From positions 1,302,001 to 1,366,000 of the forward strand of contig OZ251234.1 in NCBI GenBank assembly GCA_965240325.2: DNA of 64,000 bases, read 5' to 3'. The number at the start of each line of letters is the position of its first letter. The first letter of the stretch is position 1. Below are positions 4,792-63,525 of this stretch, piece by piece. Under the pieces are notes generated by a model. It was not told the origin of the DNA, searched no databases, and saw only the letters and a list, made by a program, of their open reading frames with translations. The stretch comes from Rebecca billardiae RCC1528. Its lineage: Eukaryota; Protista; Haptophyta. The translations under genes and the position numbers were made by a program.

Positions 4792-6384
4792 TCAGGAGAT
4801 GACGCAGCAGGCGCGCGCCTTTTTCTGCGCCAACTCCTCCGCCGGCGCGTCCGCCCTCGCGCCCCCGGCGGGCGGTGTGCGCGCGCCGTTGGACGCGGCC
4901 GGCTCGAGCTGCACGTCGTCCGCGCGCACGGGCGGGTCGGAGGCCGGCGGCTTCGCGCCGAGCTGCGGCGACGCCGGCATCGGCGGCGACTCGGCCGCGC
5001 GCTGCGGCGTCGAGTGGTGCGACGAGGCAGGCGAGTCGAGCGCTCGCTCCGTCTTGGGCGGCAGCTCGGAGAAGAAGGTGCGCAGCAGCTCCGCCGGCGC
5101 CTTGCCGTCCTTTGGGTTCATGGCCTTGATCATCGCGCTGAACTCCTTGAAGTCGACGCTCCCCGACTTGTCCTGGTCCACGATGCTGAACAGCTCCTCC
5201 ACCTTGGCGGGCGTGAGCTCGTCGTCCCCGAGCAGTGCGAGCAGGTTGAAGAAGGCGCCGCGCTCCACGCTCACCGCCTCGCCCACGATGGCCTCCCACG
5301 CCTTCTTGAGGTCCGCGTCGGTCTGCTTGCGGAAGAGCGCGCGGCAGACGGCCTTGATCTGCTCGGCGGTGTACTGCGCCTCGCGCATGTTGTGCACGAT
5401 CCGGCCGGCGCGCACGCGCTCCGCCGGCGTCATCTGAAACGACGTGCCCGCGTCGAGCGACGACACAGACGTGATGGTCGGCCCGAGGTTTTTGGGGATG
5501 ACCTGCTGCATCCAGCTGCCCGTGCGCTTGTCGCGCTTCACGCGCATGTTGCCGTACTTGGCGCGCACGGCGTGCCCGCGGAGCGACGCCTGGATCGTCG
5601 TCGCCGCCTTCTGCCGGCTGTCCATCTCCCCTCGCGTGCCGTGCCCGCGGTAGTGGGCCTGGATGGAGGTCGACGCCGACGTCTCCTGCGCGGTCGGCGG
5701 GTGGTCGAGGTGCGGCGGCACCGGCGGCGGCGCCGGCGGCGTGCCCGCGGAGGAGAAGAAGAAGGCGAGCGGGTTGGACGCCTTGGGCGGCTCCTTCGGG
5801 TTCATGCTCTTGATCAGCCTGCAGAACTCGCCGAACTCGACGCCGCCGCTCGCGTCCGCGTCCACCATCTCAAAGACCTCGTGCAGCTTCGCCTCGTCCA
5901 CGTCCTCGGTGCCGAGCAGCCCGAGCAGCGAGCGGAACGACTGCTTGGGCACGACCTCGGCGTCGCCGACGAGCGACTCCCACGCCTTTCGCAAGTCGGC
6001 CTCGGACTGCGTGAGGAAGAGCGCGCGGCACACCGCCCTGATCTGCTCGGACGTGTACGCGGCCTCGCGCATGTTGGCGACGATCACGCCCGAGCGGTGC
6101 CGCTCGTGCGGCGTCATCTTGAAGGTGGTCTCGGCGTCGAGGACGGAGACGGACGTGAGCGTCGGGCCCAGGTCCTTCGGGATGAGCGCCGACATCCAGC
6201 CCCCCGTCTGCGGGTCCTTCTTCACGCGCAGGTTGCTGAACGACTTGCGCGTCTCGTGGCCGCGGTAATGAGCCTGGATGTTGCTCGCCGCGTGGTGCTG
6301 GTTGCCGATGCTCTTGCGGGTCTCCTTACCGCGGTGGTGCGCCTGGATCTGGCTCGCGGCTACCGACTCGTTCGCTGGCGCCAT
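4792..6384 (-). CDS. Tandem-duplicated IQ-motif / EF-hand protein with C-terminal CaaX box
   Basis: Four IQ motifs (IQAHHRGKETRK, IQAHYRGHETRK, IQAHYRGHGTRG, IQASLRGHAVRA), two EF loops (DADASGGVEFGEF, DQDKSGSVDFKEF), two clearly homologous halves, ends KKARACCVIS-stop. Confidence 0.85.
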   Translation of the reverse strand: MAPANESVAASQIQAHHRGKETRKSIGNQHHAASNIQAHYRGHETRKSFSNLRVKKDPQTGGWMSALIPKDLGPTLTSVSVLDAETTFKMTPHERHRSGVIVANMREAAYTSEQIRAVCRALFLTQSEADLRKAWESLVGDAEVVPKQSFRSLLGLLGTEDVDEAKLHEVFEMVDADASGGVEFGEFCRLIKSMNPKEPPKASNPLAFFFSSAGTPPAPPPVPPHLDHPPTAQETSASTSIQAHYRGHGTRGEMDSRQKAATTIQASLRGHAVRAKYGNMRVKRDKRTGSWMQQVIPKNLGPTITSVSSLDAGTSFQMTPAERVRAGRIVHNMREAQYTAEQIKAVCRALFRKQTDADLKKAWEAIVGEAVSVERGAFFNLLALLGDDELTPAKVEELFSIVDQDKSGSVDFKEFSAMIKAMNPKDGKAPAELLRTFFSELPPKTERALDSPASSHHSTPQRAAESPPMPASPQLGAKPPASDPPVRADDVQLEPAASNGARTPPAGGARADAPAEELAQKKARACCVIS

Positions 6385-6730
6385 CGCGCCCGACCCGCCA
6401 CGCCCCGCCCTGCGAGCGGCTGGACTTGCACGAGCACCCCGCCCGCGTTGGCTCGACAGCGAAGCCCAAAAAGCTGCCTGCCGCCTTGTTGGCCGTGAGC
6501 TTTCGGGACCGCTGCTTCTAACTGTCCAGCTTGCTTACTACGGTTGCGTGTCGTCAACAGCGCAAGCGCGCAACAGCTCGCAATCTCGCGCGCGCGGCAC
6601 AAATACGGCGCGGCCCAAACAGACCCAAAAAGTACGACTTATTACCGTACAGTTTACTAAGAATATTACCGATTTCGGGCAACCGAAATCGGCAAACAAA
6701 AGAAATAAACGGAAAAGTGAAAACCGATAT

Positions 6731-6865
6731 CGAAAACGAAAACGATTTCGAGAAAACGAAAACGTTTTCTCGTTTTCGTTTTCGTTTTCTCGAAAACGAA
6801 AACGTTTTCGAGAAAACGAAAACGATTTCGAGAAATCGTTTTCGTTTTCTTTCTCGAAATCGAAA
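6731..6865. repeat. GAAAAC / TTTCGAGAAAACGAAAACGA (about 20 bp unit) subterminal array, left arm
   Basis: Direct reading; units occur in both orientations. Confidence 0.9.
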
Positions 6866-6906
6866 TCGCTTTCCGAGACGCTGTCGACGAGGTTCGGTGC
6901 CGCGAT

Positions 6907-8130
6907 GATCCGCCGATCTGAGCGATCTCGCGCTTTTGGCGGCGGATGGCGGTCTTCTGCTCCGACGTGGACCACGTCGCGCGCGTGGCGGCACTCGCCC
7001 CGTCACGATCGCGCTCGGGCTCGTTGCGGCTTGCTGGGCACCGGCGCTGATACACGTAGCGCCCGTCTCCGCCCTCAGCTGACCTCCGCGCGCCTTCCGC
7101 CGCCGCCGCCGCGTGCGCGATCGACCTGTACCGCACAGCTTGCGGAGCGGTGCGACTGTCCGTCACCGAAAACGCGCAGCTAGAGTGGCACTGCTTGAGC
7201 GGGACGCCCGTCGCGGGGTCTGCCCTCGCCATCGCTACCCCAGTATGTCCTCCGACGCCGTGTGCGCCCGCGTGTGCGCCGCCTCCTGGCCACGGGCAGC
7301 AGCGCACAGACGGACGGCGCGCCACTTCACGCGACTGCCGCGCCATCCAAGGCGACGCGCGCGGGTTGGGCGCGGGTTGGGAGGCCAGGTCGCCAACGTG
7401 CGGTGTCTGCAGCCTGCAGTCTCGTCTATATGCATCGAGCAGTACTACTAGTGAGCCGCGTGCCGTCCCGGAAGGTCACTGAGCTCGCTGCCTCAGGGAC
7501 CTGCCATCTCGAGTGGGGTCGGCTCGTCTCACTTACCTTCAACTGTTTCTGCGCTCACCGATGGCCGTGTGTCCGAGCAAATGTGCTGACTCAGAGTGCC
7601 GTGTGCTGCAGGGCGACGCGTGAACTAGACATGCATGGCTCTCGGGCGAGGAGCACGACCTGGCCTCCCAACCCGCGCGCGTCGCCTTGGATGGCGCGGC
7701 AGTCGAGTGAAGTTGCGCGCCGTCCGTCTGTGCGCTGCTGCCCGTGGCCAGGAGGCGGCGCACACGCGGGCGCACGCGGCGTCGGAGGACATACTGGGGT
7801 AGCGATGGCGAGGGCAGACCCCGCGACGGGCGTCCCGCTCAAGCAGTGCCACTCTAGCTGCGCGTTTTCGGTGACGGACAGTCGCACCGCTCCGCAAGCT
7901 GTGCGGTACAGGTCGATCGCGCACGCGGCGGCGGCGGCGGAAGGCGCGCGGAGGTCAGCTGAGGGCGGAGACGGGCGCTACGTGTATCAGCGCCGGTGCC
8001 CAGCAAGCCGCAACGAGCCCGAGCGCGATCGTGACGGGGCGAGTGCCGCCACGCGCGCGACGTGGTCCACGTCGGAGCAGAAGACCGCCATCCGCCGCCA
8101 AAAGCGCGAGATCGCTCAGATCGGCGGATC
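6907..8130. mobile_element. Palindromic non-autonomous element (arms 6907-7392 and 7656-8130, about 260 bp spacer), AT target duplication, nested in the foldback left arm
   Basis: gatccgccgatctgagcgatctcgcg... / ...cgcgagatcgctcagatcggcggatc; AT at 6905-06 and 8131-32; the empty site ccgcgATaaggct is seen in the right arm near 10385-10397. Confidence 0.9.
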
Positions 8131-10426
8131 ATAAGGCTATTTCAGAACCGTTACGGCTTCTATTTGTCCGGAGTCTGAATACGGGAATTGGAGTGGCGCG
8201 CGAGGAGCTCAGAAGGTACACTGGGCCCCGGCCAGGCAGCGGCTGGGCGATGGCAACGTGCGTCGTGGGAGGGGCACGTTCGCGGTGCTGTGCGGCCGGG
8301 TGCGCGTGGGTGGAGAAGGCGAGGCTCGCGTACGTGCAGGAGCCGCAGCTTTAGGGCCTCAGGTCGCTCCAGCACGGCTGCGGCGTCGGCTTGCCCCCGC
8401 CCGCGCCTACCGTGGGCTACGAGCGTTGGCTCTTCTGCGACGAGCACGACCCTGCTGCTCTAGCGCCGATCGGCGACGTCGTCGTGGTTGAGAGCCTCTT
8501 CGGTAGACCCGGTCCGCGTCGTCACGGCGATCTGAGGTGTGCGAGCTACGTGCGAAGCTGCACGTGCAACGCACTCTGCTCTCGCGCGCGCGCGCACAGT
8601 CGACAACACGACATCTGCTTCTGGCGCAGCCTGTCATAACAGCGGCTTCGGCGCGCCCTCGCAGGCGCGCGCGGTTAATCCCTGTCGTGCGCGCACACGG
8701 CCAACGCGTGCGTGCGGCTGCGCGTTCGCGCATGCCGTCGAGCATCAAGGCGTCTTGCGTGCACCGCTGGTCCGCCCGTCCGCGGGCGTTTGTGGCAGCC
8801 GAGTAGTCAGTATACGTCTGTACTAGCGCTCTAGCAGTGTCATTGATGCGGTCGGCAGCGCGAGATCGACCTGGGCACCTCGGATGATGTGCCCCTGAGT
8901 TGCAGTCAGAGGCGCCAGACCCAGATCGGGCCCGGCGCCTGAACCTGGGCTACTTGTCAGCGGCACGGCCGCAGCTTGGCCAGCTTCTTGCTGGCTTGGG
9001 CGGTCCACTCCGGTCGGCCAGCGGCCGGCGCGCAGTAAATAGCTCATCCAGAGGCCGCGTGTCGCGCGTTCAGCCGCGCTGCCGAGCTCTAGCTGCACTT
9101 CGCCACGAGCTCATGCAGCGCCGCGAGCGCTGTGTCGCGCTGCTCGGCGTACTCACCCGGCGCCGCCACCAATAGGTCGATGCATACGGGCCACACGGCC
9201 ATGGCGATGAAGTGGCCAGCGGCTGCGTGGGGCTGGCCCTCGCGCAGCAGCCGCTGCCTGTCCACGTCGAAGCGCCGCGCGTACCTGCCACCGTCTGCGG
9301 CGTGGCTGCGTACACTTGTCGCCAAACGCCGCGTCCGCGTCCGTCTCCTAGCCGCGCACCGCGTGCCACTCGGCGCGCAGCTGGTGCAGCTTGGGCATTG
9401 GCGGGCAGCGCGGCGCGGAGCGCGGCGTGGTTCCCGGGCATTAGCATGTGCCGCATGCCCTTTGTCATGTCGCCCATCCTGTGCGCCAGCGCGGCCAGCA
9501 GCTTGCCCTGACGGTCACAGGCCGACGGACGCTTGAGCGTACTGCCCAAGGAGAGAGTGCCTCCGCCGTATCCTCCACCGGGTGGCGAGAGTATCACATA
9601 AATCTTCACCGTGCTCCCCGTCCGATTGTGCGGCTTGGTAACCGCGTGCCTGCCAGTCGAAGAAGTGGCCAGCCGCTCCTGCCCCGACTCCGCGAGAGCA
9701 GCAGCATCGTAACTGCTACCGTACACTTGGCTCTCGACCAGGGACGGGCGGACCAGCGGTGCACGCAAGACGCCTTGATGCTCGACGGCATGCGCGAACG
9801 CGCAGCCGCACGCACGCGTTGGCCGTGTGCGCGCACGACAGGGATTAACCGCGCGCGCCTGCGAGGGCGCGCCGAAGCCGCTGTTATGACAGGCTGCGCC
9901 AGAAGCAGATGTCGTGTTGTCGACTGTGCGCGCGCGCGCGAGAGCAGAGTGCGTTGCACGTGCAGCTTCGCACGTAGCTCGCGCACCTCAGATCGCCGTG
10001 ACGACGCGGACTGGGACTACCGAAGAGGCTCTCAACCACGACGACGTCGCCGATCAGCGCTAGAGCAGCAGGGTCGTGCTCGTCGCAGAAGAGCCAACGC
10101 TCGTAGCCCACGGTAGGCGCGGGCGGGGGCAAGCCGACGCCGCAGCCGTGCTGGAGCGACCTGAGGCCCTAAAGCTGCGGCTCCTGCACGTACGCGAGCC
10201 TCGCCTTCTCCACCCACGCGCACCCGGCCGCACAGCACCGCGAACGTGCCCCTCCCACGACGCACGTTGCCATCGCCCAGCCGCTGCCTGGCCGGGGCCC
10301 AGTGTACCTTCTGAGCTCCTCGCGCGCCACTCCAATTCCCGTATTCAGACTCCGGACAAATAGAAGCCGTAACGGTTCTGAAATAGCCTTATCGCGGCAC
10401 CGAACCTCGTCGACAGCGTCTCGGAA

Positions 10427-10630
10427 AGCGAAAGAAAACGAAAACGATTTCTCGAAATCGTTTTCGTTTTCTCGAAATCGTTTTCGTTTTCTCGAAATCG
10501 TTTTCGTTTTCTCGAAAACGTTTTCGTTTTCTCGAAATCGTTTTCGTTTTCGTTTTCGTTTTCGAGAAAACGAAAACGATTTCGAGAAAACGAAAACGAT
10601 TTCGAGAAAGAAAACGTTTTCGTTTTCGAT
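10427..10630. repeat. GTTTTC / 20 bp unit subterminal array, right arm of the foldback
   Basis: Direct reading; longer than the left-arm array. Confidence 0.9.
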
Positions 10631-10797
10631 TTCTGGAAATCATTTGTGGCACGATTTCGGTTGCCCGAAATCGGTAATAAGAGACGCACACAGCTCAGGC
10701 AGGCGAGATTAGAGTTCCGCATGCCTGGCTACTCGCGCAGTCCGGGAAAACGGGAAAAGATGATTCGCAGTGCTCTAGCTGGTTTGCAATAAGAAAA

Positions 10798-13275
10798 ATG
10801 GCCGCTCTTGCTCGATCGCTGAGGAGGACGGGCATCGTCGCGCTCCTCGTGCTCCACCACGGGCGCGTCTCGGCGCAGCACGACGAGGACCTTCGAGAGC
10901 GCACCTGGGTCGAGCTCATCGGCGCCTTCAACCGCGCAAAGGAGTCGCGCGCCGACGCCGACTGGGAGCACCTGGCGGCCGCGTTCGCGTCGAAGCGCTC
11001 TGCGCTGGGCAGAAGGCAGGTGTCAGTCTTGCAGGGGCTGTGGGACCAGCACGCGTGGCGACCCGACGGCGCCACGCCGCGCGCCACCCTCCTCGCCGAC
11101 GTCACGCCCCTCCCCGGCCGCTCCATGTTCAGCGCGCTCGTCTGGGACGGCGCGCACGGCGTGCACCACTCGCTCACCGGCATGCGCCCGTCCGGGGACG
11201 CGACGTACGAGCAGCGCGACGCGGCGTTCGGCCTCGTGCCGGGCACGCGCGCCTCCGTGCGCGTCGACGGCTGGGAGGACCCGCACGCCGTGCGGCTGCG
11301 CGACGGCAGCGCGCCCGGCACGCAGACGTACGCGTTTGTCTTCCAGCGGTTTGGCTGCGGCGGCCGCTGCGACATGCCCGTGGGCGTGGCTATCGTCGAG
11401 CTCGGGCCGGCCGGGCTGGCGGACGGGGCGGAGCTCGACGTGCGCCCCGTCTCGGTCGTGCATGGCAGCGCGACCATCCGCCCGCCCGCCAAGAACTGGT
11501 CCCCGCTCGCGCTGGGCGGCGCGCTCCACCTCGTGGTCGCGCTCGACCCGCTCACGGTCGTGCGCTGCGGGGACGGCGCCGCGCCGGCGGCGCGGGGCGC
11601 GGCGCGGGGCGGGGCGGCCGACGAGCGCGGGGAGGAGGGCGGGTCGGCGGAGGAGCTGCCGTGCACGCTCGTGCACTGCACGGGCTGCGACCCGTCCAAC
11701 CCGCTCAGCGCGCCCATCTTCACGCGCGCGCACTCGGCAACGCTCGCGCTGCGCGGCGGCACGCAGCTCGAGCCGGTCGATCCGGCCGGCGGGCGGAGCG
11801 AGGCCAGCGGCCGCTTCCTCGGCCTGGCGCACTCGCGCATCCCGGGGTGCGCGGCGACGCTGCCGCCGCACTCGTACTACGCGACGCACGCCTTCGTGCT
11901 GCGCGCGCTGCCCACGTGGCGCCTCGAGTACGTCTCGGCCGCGCTCGAGTTCGACGCGCCGCCCGGGCCGCTGCGCGCGCACACGCGCGCGCAGGTCTCG
12001 TCAGCCTCGTCCATAGTCCGGCTTGGCGCGCCGCGCGCCGCTCGTGAGGGCGCAGCGCCCGGCGCGGCGTCGAGCTGGGCGGAGCGCTCGGAGGAGGAGG
12101 CCGACGACGCCGCGCTCCTGTTCGCCGTCAACGTGGACGACACGTTCGGCGCCTCGCTCGTCGCGCGCCTCCACGCCGTGCCCCAACTCCTCGCGGACGC
12201 GGAGCGCACCGCCGCGCGCGGCCTGCCGCTGCCGGGCTACTGGAACCTGTCGACCGCGGCGGCGGCGGAGGCGGCGTGCGGCGCGTTCGCCGCGGCGATC
12301 GACGCCGGCGAGGCGCGGCCGATGGACTCGCCGCCCGCACTCACCCCACTGCACGAGGCCGCCGCCCTGGCGGACGTCGACGGCGTGCGCGCGCTGCTCA
12401 GCGAGCGCGCGTCCGTGCGCGCGAGCGGAGGGCTCGCGCACCACTCGGCACTGATGCACGCGCTCTGGGCGTGGACGCGCACCGCGGGGGGCAGCGGCGG
12501 CAGCGCGGGCGTCGGGGCGAGCGCGCCCGCGCGCGAGGTGGTGCGCCTGCTCCTCGACCACGGCGCCGACGCGAACGAGCGCGACCGCCACGGCTTCCAC
12601 CCGCTCGCCGTCGCCGCCGCGATCGAGAGCTCGCCTGAGCCCGACATGCAGCTGATGCTCGGGCGGCGCGGGCTGAGCGGCGACGAGAGGCCGCTTGTCC
12701 AGCTGCTGCTCTCCCACGGCGCGGAGCCGAACGCGCGGATTGACGGCGCGTACGGCGTGCTCATCGTCGCCGCGGCGTGGGCGGACGGCGCGCTCGTCGA
12801 GCTGCTGCTCGGCCATGGCGCGGACGTGGACGCACGCACCAAGCACGGCGCGACCGCGCTGCACGCCGCGTGCCAGTTCGGCGCCGTGCGCGCCGCGCGC
12901 GCGCTGCTCGGCGCGGGCGCGGACCCGAACGCCCGGACGCACGACGAGTGGATCACGCCGCTCCACGTCGCGACGCAGTACGTCGCGCCGCTCCCCTTCG
13001 GCGTGCTCGTGCCGCCGATCCCGCCGGAGCCGCCGATGATGGCCGCCGTCGGCCTGCGCGCCCTGCACAAGCGCGCTCCCGAGCTGATCGCCGCGCTGCG
13101 CGCGCACGGCGCCGACCCGAATGCGCGAGACGCGGACGGGCGCACGCCCATCGAGCTCGCGCGCGCGCACCGGCACGGCGCGGCCGCGCGCGCGCTCGCG
13201 GCTCAGCCAGAGGCAGTGTCGGGGTCGGAGCAGTGTGACGACCGCACGATGTCAGCTGACGCGGCATCGGGCTGA
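10798..13275 (+). CDS. Signal-peptide protein with a GH130/GT91(BMT)-like beta-propeller-type domain fused to C-terminal ankyrin repeats
   Basis: N-terminal hydrophobic leader; motifs WEDPH, KNWSPL, LRGGTQL, FLGLAHSR; ankyrin repeats TPLHEAA, LLLDHGADAN, GATALHAAC, LLGAGADPN, GRTPIELA. Confidence 0.75.
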   Translation: MAALARSLRRTGIVALLVLHHGRVSAQHDEDLRERTWVELIGAFNRAKESRADADWEHLAAAFASKRSALGRRQVSVLQGLWDQHAWRPDGATPRATLLADVTPLPGRSMFSALVWDGAHGVHHSLTGMRPSGDATYEQRDAAFGLVPGTRASVRVDGWEDPHAVRLRDGSAPGTQTYAFVFQRFGCGGRCDMPVGVAIVELGPAGLADGAELDVRPVSVVHGSATIRPPAKNWSPLALGGALHLVVALDPLTVVRCGDGAAPAARGAARGGAADERGEEGGSAEELPCTLVHCTGCDPSNPLSAPIFTRAHSATLALRGGTQLEPVDPAGGRSEASGRFLGLAHSRIPGCAATLPPHSYYATHAFVLRALPTWRLEYVSAALEFDAPPGPLRAHTRAQVSSASSIVRLGAPRAAREGAAPGAASSWAERSEEEADDAALLFAVNVDDTFGASLVARLHAVPQLLADAERTAARGLPLPGYWNLSTAAAAEAACGAFAAAIDAGEARPMDSPPALTPLHEAAALADVDGVRALLSERASVRASGGLAHHSALMHALWAWTRTAGGSGGSAGVGASAPAREVVRLLLDHGADANERDRHGFHPLAVAAAIESSPEPDMQLMLGRRGLSGDERPLVQLLLSHGAEPNARIDGAYGVLIVAAAWADGALVELLLGHGADVDARTKHGATALHAACQFGAVRAARALLGAGADPNARTHDEWITPLHVATQYVAPLPFGVLVPPIPPEPPMMAAVGLRALHKRAPELIAALRAHGADPNARDADGRTPIELARAHRHGAAARALAAQPEAVSGSEQCDDRTMSADAASG

Positions 13276-34963: not shown

Positions 34964-35965
34964 CAGTTTACTAAGAATAAGAGACGCACACAGCTCAGGC
35001 AGGCGAGATTGCAGTACTTGTGCAACTTACTTACTGCAAGGGTGGTCCTTACTGTGCATTATGGATTCAATCTTTCATGAAAGATTGAAATGGCCATTGA
35101 AAGTTTCAGTATTTTTCATGAAAATTTCATGAAAAGTGAAAGATTGTGAAGTTTTCACGTCCTGCGCTGCGGGAATTAATTTATTCCCGCAGCAGCAGTG
35201 ACTAAAATGATTTTCCGCCCACCATGTCGGCGGCATCGAGCCGCCTGGGCGGAGCAAGGCCGGGCGCTACGGCGCGTGCGGCGCGTGAGGCGCGCGCACG
35301 CACGCGCGTGGCGCGCTCCACCTTGCTTAGCCCCGGCTTTTGTCCTGCTCCCTGGCTCCCTGCTGCGCGTCTCCGCGCCGCAGACTGACGGCGCCGACTA
35401 CGACGAGCCGTGATCACACGGCGGCTCGGCGCGTGTGAGCCTGCTGTATGAGCGAGCTCAGACGACCGAGGTCGAGGCTGACTTCGACCGGCTGCTGCAG
35501 GAGAAGCCTCAGCAGGAGCTCGAGGCTGAGAAGGCTGCTGAGCGCTTGCGGACGCTGACTCTGGACAACCGGGTGATGGATTCTACGGAGCCACTGTCGC
35601 TGTCAGGCCCGAGATGTTGTTGAATGTTTCGCTGCAGGGTGTATGAAGGGCTGACGGAAGGCATGCCGAGGATAGTAGCATGTTGCGCCAAGGCCGCATG
35701 CCGTGACAGTGACGATCCACGCGCTGTCGGCCAGCACCGCTGGCTTGCCGTGCGCAGCCGCGCCACGCGCGGCCATGCTGGCAAGGAATATATTTTCGGA
35801 GAAAATCACGTCATTTTTTATTCCCGCTGAGCAATGAAAGATTGGAACGGCCTTTGAAACTTTCAGTATTTTTCATGAAATTTTCATGAAATGAAAGATT
35901 GTGAAATATTTCATCCAGATCCATGCCTGCCTGAGCTGTGTGCGTCTCTTATTCTTAGTAAACTG
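34964..35965. mobile_element. Complete 1002 bp MITE-like element of the CAGTTTACTAAG family; 41 bp perfect TIRs; 2 bp TG duplication
   Basis: TG|cagtttactaagaataagagacgcacacagctcaggcaggc (34964-35004) and its reverse complement 35925-35965|TG; internal about 80 bp direct repeats at 35077-35157 and 35834-35913. Confidence 0.88.
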
Positions 35966-63484: not shown

Positions 63485-63525
63485 TGCCTGAGCTGTGTGC
63501 GTCTCTTATTATTCTTAGTAAACTG
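63485..63525 (-). mobile_element. Solo TIR of the CAGTTTACTAAG family with a 3 bp expansion at the TA target
   Basis: Reverse complement reads TA|cagtttactaagaaTAaTAagagacgcacacagctcaggca. Confidence 0.85.

Follow-up and report, generated by a model that had tools for sequence, protein, structure and literature searches.

A three-layer nest of mobile elements between two genes of the haptophyte Rebecca billardiae

Positions 6650-10710 of the window (that is, the whole stretch of 64,000 nucleotides analysed here) hold three layers of mobile elements between two genes. We suggest, with a probability of about 0.8, that this nest is a chance pile-up of three unrelated mobile elements, namely the 3' tail of a LINE-like retroelement, a foldback element (FB) and a palindromic element (Q). 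The nest is ordinary, and FB and Q are fresh members of familiar kinds; the value of the analysis is mainly corrective, in that an apparent hunting of one transposon's end by another would come down to a chance nest in LINE-tail scrap. The three-level nest with legible duplications described by the first-pass annotation stands, as does its 4-kb foldback level, but its identities for the host and the innermost insert (two of the three levels) were wrong. The locus is laid out as follows:

4795-6384, minus strand: EF-hand/IQ protein gene, the upstream neighbour of the nest, reading away from it
6650-6665, minus strand (LINE sense): outer part of the LINE 3'-tail snippet (CAGTTTACTAAGAA + TA), with the usual TA just before it (6648-6649)
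6666-10677, no strand assigned: FB together with its passenger Q, 4,012 bp, of which 1,752 bp (6666-8132 and 10393-10677) belong to FB itself
10680-10710, minus strand: remainder of the LINE tail snippet, its inner part (AGAGAC...GGCGAGAT[T]), with (T)A directly after it and then unique DNA
10798-13272, plus strand: ankyrin-repeat protein gene, the downstream neighbour, with its ATG 88 bp past the end of the nest

In the proposed order of events, a LINE-like retroelement would have deposited 46-47 bp of its 3' tail at a TA as a 5'-truncated copy, such scrap probably originating from aborted target-primed reverse transcription. The gene-less FB would then have entered the TA of an AT-rich stretch of this tail (AAGAATAAG) with duplication of the TA, and Q would finally have entered an AT between the core and the right arm of FB, duplicating the AT in turn.

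The middle layer is the clearest. As previously claimed, a 4-kb element with perfect ends and a TA duplication interrupts a 41-bp sequence (the 41-mer) at the inner TA of the latter (6650-6665/10678-10710). The ends of FB are perfect inverted copies over 26 bp, and intact 41-mers, of which the genome holds 861 and which were used as empty sites for the FB insertion, carry a single TA at this point. The parts of FB, none of them assigned to a strand, are:

6664-6665, with its second copy at 10678-10679: TA target duplication
6669-6692, mirrored at 10651-10674: tip hairpin with a 10-bp stem and a GCAA loop
6730-6850: left one of two subterminal arrays, its 20-bp units being of the GAAAACGAAAACGATTTCGA type in either orientation; the right array lies at 10448-10622
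6907-8130: P, the palindromic core, with 466-nt arms and a 296-nt loop
10393-10677: right arm (inner 41 nt, repeat array and tip hairpin)

The TA duplication is present in the three complete FB copies; an ATA or AATA parse is possible, but the ends then become asymmetric. Folded as single-stranded DNA, the tip hairpin reaches -12.1 kcal/mol (z = -6.4), and the 20-bp array motif, searched for genome-wide, is absent beyond the FB loci of the window and C8:615697. Pfam was blank in the FB segments tested, and FB has no long gene-like open reading frame. An exhaustive genome search with the tip places the family at four loci (two full copies, one mini form and one fragment, the last on C21), including a MITE-sized member of 198 bp; identity between the FB of the window and the 2,047-bp copy on chromosome 8 (contig C8, 615697-617743) is 96.7-99%. 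Weak tip matches also occur at C15:874890 and C29:51102. For annotation, FB offers a low-copy family recognizable by its hairpin tips and TA duplication.

Q is the true innermost insert of the nest. Its features, again without strand, are:

8131-8132, with its second copy at 10391-10392: AT target duplication of Q, the single AT in the C8 copy of FB being the paralogous empty site
8133-10390: Q, a gene-less palindromic element of 2,258 bp (arms 8133-8788 and 9735-10390, loop 8789-9734)

Including the AT, the inverted arms (8131-8788/9735-10392) match at 99% over 658 nt. Three stand-alone copies (C14:246358, C7:1361940 and C33:871675) are 99.4-99.6% identical, and AT flanks all four Q copies (eight termini altogether) in the contexts C-AT-C, C-AT-C, G-AT-A and T-AT-T, the ends beginning with AAGG. 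Six stop-free segments from the loop and inner arms gave nothing real against Pfam, and the fold of the Q tip hairpin is insignificant. For annotation, Q offers a young family of palindromes that is marked by an AT duplication.

Both elements resemble known systems in part. In foldback transposons, short tandem repeats make up part of the inverted arms, which surround a middle domain; these elements have no coding function, few of their copies are complete, and most foldbacks described duplicate 8-10 bp and have been placed in Mutator (PMC4079207). FB likewise has long inverted repeats with tandem sub-repeats around a middle domain and shares with Drosophila FB, Tetris and Galileo-type long-TIR elements the tandem-repeat arms, the middle domain, the absence of coding, the small number of complete copies and the absence of a recognized autonomous partner. 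It differs in its 2-bp TA duplication in place of the 8-10-bp Mutator type, in the GCAA-loop hairpin of 10 bp at each tip and in its GC-rich algal host. The TA duplication and the 198-bp member are shared with non-autonomous Tc1/mariner elements (Stowaway-like MITEs), whereas FB has no transposase gene, no autonomous element with the same tips and tips other than the CAGT with which those of Tc1 typically begin. The 2-bp TA duplication points to a Tc1/mariner-type cut-and-paste enzyme that may act in trans. Replitron-type elements were also considered for the hairpin tips and rejected, given that Replitrons have terminal direct repeats and not inverted arms. For Q, the closest parallel is the ISL2EU group of PHIS (that is, PIF/Harbinger-ISL2EU-Spy), in which a 5'-AT-3' duplication is diagnostic, the target context is A-AT-T, the TIRs begin with GG and the members surveyed came only from animals (PMC4482050). 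The 5'-AT-3' duplication of all four Q copies is the signature of this group and suggests PIF/Harbinger-like transposases; Q differs in lacking A-AT-T flanks, in its AAGG rather than GG ends, in its 658-bp arms and in having no genes.

FB and Q are both gene-less and low-copy. They could be imagined as one undescribed algal group of gene-less palindromes, mobilized by a single enzyme that cuts A/T dinucleotides with a 2-bp stagger and favours LINE tails, although we consider this unlikely. A terminal motif common to FB and Q (ATTTCNG..AACCG, at equal offset) was matched by shuffles (1001/5000). No transposase could be tied to FB or Q and no longer element with the termini of either was found in the genome, which has two DDE_Tnp_4 loci (C15:1907816 and C7:714907).

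In the host layer, the 41-mer had been labelled a TIR. We propose that this sequence is the invariant 3' terminus of a giant LINE-like element that encodes an RT. The 861 copies are nearly all solitary, occurring as 5'-truncated scraps that adjoin a TA, and an inverted partner within 1.5 kb was found for none of the 30 sampled copies, so that the two copies expected of a TIR are not seen. Tail snippets in the genome number ~860-1,400. The length shared by tail copies varies between 42 bp and at least 539 bp, with a constant start at one end and a variable other end; 16 of the 30 sampled copies measure only 42-47 bp, the commonest shared length class is 47, and the copy that hosts the nest, at just 46-47 bp, has this shared length. 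By coordinates only, six of the seven best RVT_1 matches (open frames of 1,880-3,371 aa) are followed on the correct strand, at a constant 5.02-5.05 kb, by a tail copy that measures at least 539 bp; C5:1894139-1903000 and C17:675000-684364 are two of these six RT-bearing copies. The fixed 3' end, the variable 5' truncation and, again by coordinates, the RT of the full-length element with its large open frame are features of 5'-truncated LINE copies and LINE-tail-sharing retroposons. In contrast to usual LINE copies, the truncation is extreme, poly(A) is lacking and TA occurs on both sides. A discrete unit of 464 or 539 bp was considered for this family and rejected, those limits being the truncation points of the query copies. 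Exact scans of metagenome contigs returned no match to the LINE tail or to the FB tip. The abundant 41-mer can serve to flag 5'-truncated LINE tails, not TIRs. Two further tail snippets lie in the window:

34964-35011, minus strand: separate 48-bp LINE tail snippet, the reference copy of the first-pass annotation
35925-35965, plus strand: separate 41-bp LINE tail snippet, its second reference, abutting an unrelated repeat of ~865 bp

The 41-mer itself is indeed intact at 34964-35004 (+) and 35925-35965 (-), where the chance expectation is 0. These two do not represent the TIRs of one unit, because the bracketed ~865-bp repeat (35060-35924) is unrelated and its four other copies stop at the identical base without the tail. 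As this is the only apparent TIR pair of the window, it also weakens the proposal of a Tc1-like DNA transposon with the 41-mer as its TIR, in which the solo copies would represent long excision footprints from aborted gap repair. TA-CAGT, a hallmark of Tc1, fits such a TIR; TA lies outside 29 of the 30 sampled 41-mers and, in about 16-17 of them, also marks the inner junction; and three inner junctions have the sequence CAG-TA, similar to the canonical Tc1 footprint. However, the constant spacing of ~5.03 kb between the tail and the RT open frames and the strictly one-ended fragments (inverted partner, 0/30) are at odds with this proposal, which we regard as distinctly improbable.

The suggestion that FB preferentially targets the 41-mer (that is, transposon-on-transposon parasitism by way of an FB transposase that prefers the 41-mer) fails because the remaining three of the four FB loci lie outside the 41-mer, at unrelated and mostly AT-rich TA sites (gaaTA/TAaac, taaTA/TAaat and ccaTA), the very outcome that the first-pass annotation had named as refuting it. 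The data favour the alternative raised at the same time, a TA-rich site within a genome of high GC content: the left 50 bp at three of the four FB sites have a GC content of 38%, compared with 68.7% for the window and 69% for the genome. FB would have landed in the tail because the latter is a small AT-rich pocket in such a genome, rather than through sequence recognition. One FB insertion of four does fall within a 41-mer, although 41-mers hold only ~0.06% of the TA sites and ~1% of the AATAA sites of the genome, and AA-TA-A at three of the four sites is consistent with a preference; however, the shared AATAA is a general A/T-rich context and the sites number only four. By rough estimate, the chance that at least one of four FB insertions would hit a 41-mer is ~1-4%, which is not likely a priori, yet the case was singled out post hoc. 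A preference of the FB transposase for the 41-mer is, in our view, a little harder still to credit than a Tc1-like origin.

The innermost layer had been described as a 1.2-kb palindrome (P) splitting the left arm of FB with an AT duplication, and this is wrong: P is the FB element's own core, and Q is the insert. Although the duplications are legible, as claimed, the further claim that all empty sites can be rebuilt within the window and the order of insertion read from it holds only in part. With the layout L-AT-P-AT-Q-AT-R, the window alone does not decide between P and Q as the insert, and Q could have joined FB before the composite moved here, which makes the order only partly readable. 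The choice between P and Q is made by the C8 copy, which reads L-AT-P-AT-R (that is, P in the same place and Q missing), together with the three stand-alone, AT-flanked copies of Q. The inverted arms of P (6905-7370/7667-8132) match at 99% over 466 nt, and the C21 fragment has P adjoining the tip of FB. Its single-arm relatives (81-82% identity) lie within a ~1-kb repeat. The opposite arrangement, in which P would have entered the left arm of a base element L-Q-R and duplicated an AT, can draw on the right arm in the window, where L'-AT-Q could be used as an empty site for P. Against it, the C8 copy lacks Q, Q is mobile by itself, no stand-alone palindromic copy of P occurs in the genome, and homology of P to the ~1-kb repeat passes the supposed junction, in one alignment, by running across the AT for 16 nt into the FB arm; we consider this arrangement very improbable.

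Large near-perfect palindromes are a known class of assembly artefact, but an origin of the arms in foldback chimeric long reads is the least credible reading of all, given that FB structures (two full, one mini form and one fragment) and the Q palindrome (four loci) occur repeatedly, at independent loci that have separate flanks and 2-bp duplications, and that the nest lies mid-contig.

An Rfam scan of 6000-11500 returned sub-threshold microRNA-like matches and one spurious bacterial sRNA match on the hairpin arrays. The neighbouring genes are divergently transcribed, and the nest represents ~4 kb in addition to an original intergenic gap of ~0.4 kb, a gain by which the expression of both could be affected.

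The nest lies in a 72-Mb, 41-contig eukaryotic assembly, in a window (C17:1302001–1366000) of 68.7% GC, and because it sits between an EF-hand/IQ gene and an ankyrin-repeat gene, it occupies an otherwise ~0.4-kb divergent intergenic gap. The split 41-mer, which the first-pass annotation took for a terminal inverted repeat (TIR), starts normally at 6650 and reads up to ...AAGAATA (6665), after which come a 4,012-bp element (6666–10677) with perfect 26-bp inverted ends, TA (10678–10679) and the remainder of the 41-mer. As intact 41-mers carry a single TA at that point, this TA was duplicated by the element. Splitting at an internal TA by a ~4-kb element with perfect ends and a TA duplication, as originally described, is therefore borne out, and inverted-repeat analysis of the window reproduces the inverted repeats described within the nest.

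Features of the window outside the 4,012-bp element
4795–6384, minus strand: EF-hand/IQ gene, flanking the nest on one side
10798–13272, plus strand: ankyrin-repeat gene, flanking the nest on the other side
34964, (+): uninterrupted 41-mer, sequence match
35060–35924: ~865-bp repeat of an unclassified family, 4 other genome copies at 95–96% identity
35925, (-): uninterrupted 41-mer, sequence match
63485–63525: LINE tail snippet, tail positions 1–38, 93% identical

The 41-mer is not a TIR; the element interrupted by the foldback is a scrap of a LINE tail. The genome holds 861 occurrences (up to 3 mismatches) versus 0 for a control, and in a sample of 30 copies no inverted partner lies within 1.5 kb of any. 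Placed in a common orientation, all of these have the same outer end and diverge further in (after 42–47 bp in 16, 53–60 bp in 9, 92–218 bp in 4 and at least 477 bp in 2, counting the reference copy itself), and past that point their sequences are unrelated to one another. Longer queries are matched by dozens of copies as far as the query's own truncation point (477, then 539 bp), and in ~340 kb of genome DNA each tail fragment begins at tail position 1 or no more than about 10 nt from it, none comprising the inner part alone. The seven best reverse transcriptase (RT)-domain matches genome-wide fall within open frames of 1,880–3,371 aa; by coordinates, six of them are followed 5.02–5.05 kb downstream by a tail copy at least 539 bp long and correctly stranded. 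Such a pattern is that of a large LINE-like element, heavily 5'-truncated. TA stands outside the tail in 29 of the 30 copies and at its inner junction in about 16–17; the copy at 6650 is just 46–47 bp long, with (T)A and then unique DNA after it. The reference 'pair' at 34964 and 35925 consists of two distinct snippets, of 48 and 41 bp, and was rejected as one unit, given that they surround the unrelated ~865-bp repeat, whose four other copies lack the tail.

The interrupting foldback element is rare, its 26-bp tip occurring at only four genome loci, plus two places with 3 mismatches where a related family, or a partner element, may have one of its ends.

Foldback copies and tip matches
Window 6666–10677: copy, 4,012 bp
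C8:615697–617743: copy, 2,047 bp
C8:2069855–2070052: mini form, 198 bp
C21:514229: fragment, left end alone, rearranged
C15:874890 (+) and C29:51102 (-): single tip matches with 3 mismatches (TTACCGATTTCGGGCAACTGAAAACA)

In a genome search, the 20-bp subterminal unit was confined to the window copy and the 2,047-bp copy. Each tip folds into a hairpin (10-bp stem, GCAA loop; -12.1 kcal/mol, z = -6.4), and open-frame analysis and Pfam found no genes in the foldback. Rfam matches on its 20-bp inverted arrays at 10436–10625 ('Clostridiales-1', 53.2 against a gathering score of 48, and many microRNA precursors) were rejected as artefacts of hairpin repeats. The right arm of the 2,047-bp copy holds an additional ~170-bp insert within the repeat array (L050:4365–4535); the sequence at its end (...cgttgcataccacgtcgtta) is identical to that flanking a LINE tail in L032, which places the insert in yet another repeat family.

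The 1.2-kb palindrome, P, had been read as an insert in the left arm, a role that falls instead to Q, a palindromic element at 8133–10390. The window has the order left arm-AT-P-AT-Q-AT-right arm; the 2,047-bp copy is a single continuous palindrome (left arm-AT-P-AT-right arm) and matches the window copy without Q at 96.7–99% identity. P also adjoins the tip in the C21 fragment, and never occurs in the genome as a palindrome by itself. Its sole other relatives are single arms, 81–82% identical, within a ~1-kb repeat (CATGGCGCGCGC...CCCCCGGCTGAA; L057:1053–2032 and L058:1060–2036, 93% identical to each other), and one such alignment crosses the AT and extends 16 nt into the foldback arm. As the 3' half of this repeat resembles the foldback core arms (81–82%), sequence similarity makes it the likely source of the long arms. 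Q (658-bp arms, 946-bp loop, no recognisable gene in a Pfam scan) has three stand-alone copies of 99.4–99.6% identity, each with AT on either side, and exactly eight termini in the genome. The 2,047-bp foldback copy has a single AT where Q would lie, and is therefore the empty site for Q.

The claim that the order of insertion is readable holds in part: the LINE tail is older than the foldback at this locus, and the foldback core is older than Q, whereas Q may have entered either before or after the foldback's arrival here.

Both elements have inverted ends, no genes, low copy number and a 2-bp duplication (TA for the foldback, AT for Q) with an empty site, and we suggest that they were moved by cut-and-paste in trans. 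TA duplication is typical of Tc1/mariner. AT duplication marks the ISL2EU group (PMC4482050), which Q resembles in this respect but not in the A|AT|T context or GG ends, both of which it lacks; two DDE_Tnp_4 loci are present in the genome. The foldback structure has been proposed to arise independently in several superfamilies (PMC4079207).

Preferential targeting of the 41-mer by the foldback, as first proposed, is contradicted by the flanks of all four loci (gaaTA/TAaga in the window, gaaTA/TAaac, taaTA/TAaat and ccaTA), the other three not lying in a 41-mer. The TA hit in the tail represents about 0.06% of TA sites (~1.4 million genome-wide, scaled up from 1,212 in the 64-kb window) and about 1% of AATAA sites; the chance of one tail hit in four insertions is at most a few per cent, for an event picked out post hoc. 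The data fit the alternative also offered, of a TA-rich spot in a GC-rich genome: three of the four sites are 'pockets' in an AT-poor genome, with 38% GC in the left 50 bp.

Several minor observations concern repeats around the tail. The ~865-bp repeat bears ~82-bp direct repeats near either end (35077–35157 and 35834–35913, 89% identical). Tail snippets cluster 50–200 bp apart, in tandem and head-to-head (C8:3348896–3349042, C19:1093856–1094061, C7:1169731–1169936, C39:597730–597821 and C14:117002–117103), which suggests that the same TA sites were used repeatedly for insertion. Another repeat, beginning CAGTTTACTATGTTTT(T)AACGTGCA, adjoins the tail at L042:1547–1575 and in L048 (minus strand); it has only its first 10 nt in common with the LINE tail and may represent a sister family's tail. 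At L034:1440–1500, a 45-bp snippet lies upstream of a 477-bp tail copy and is preceded by TA-CAGT-TA, which resembles a 4-nt remnant of that tail end lying between TAs.
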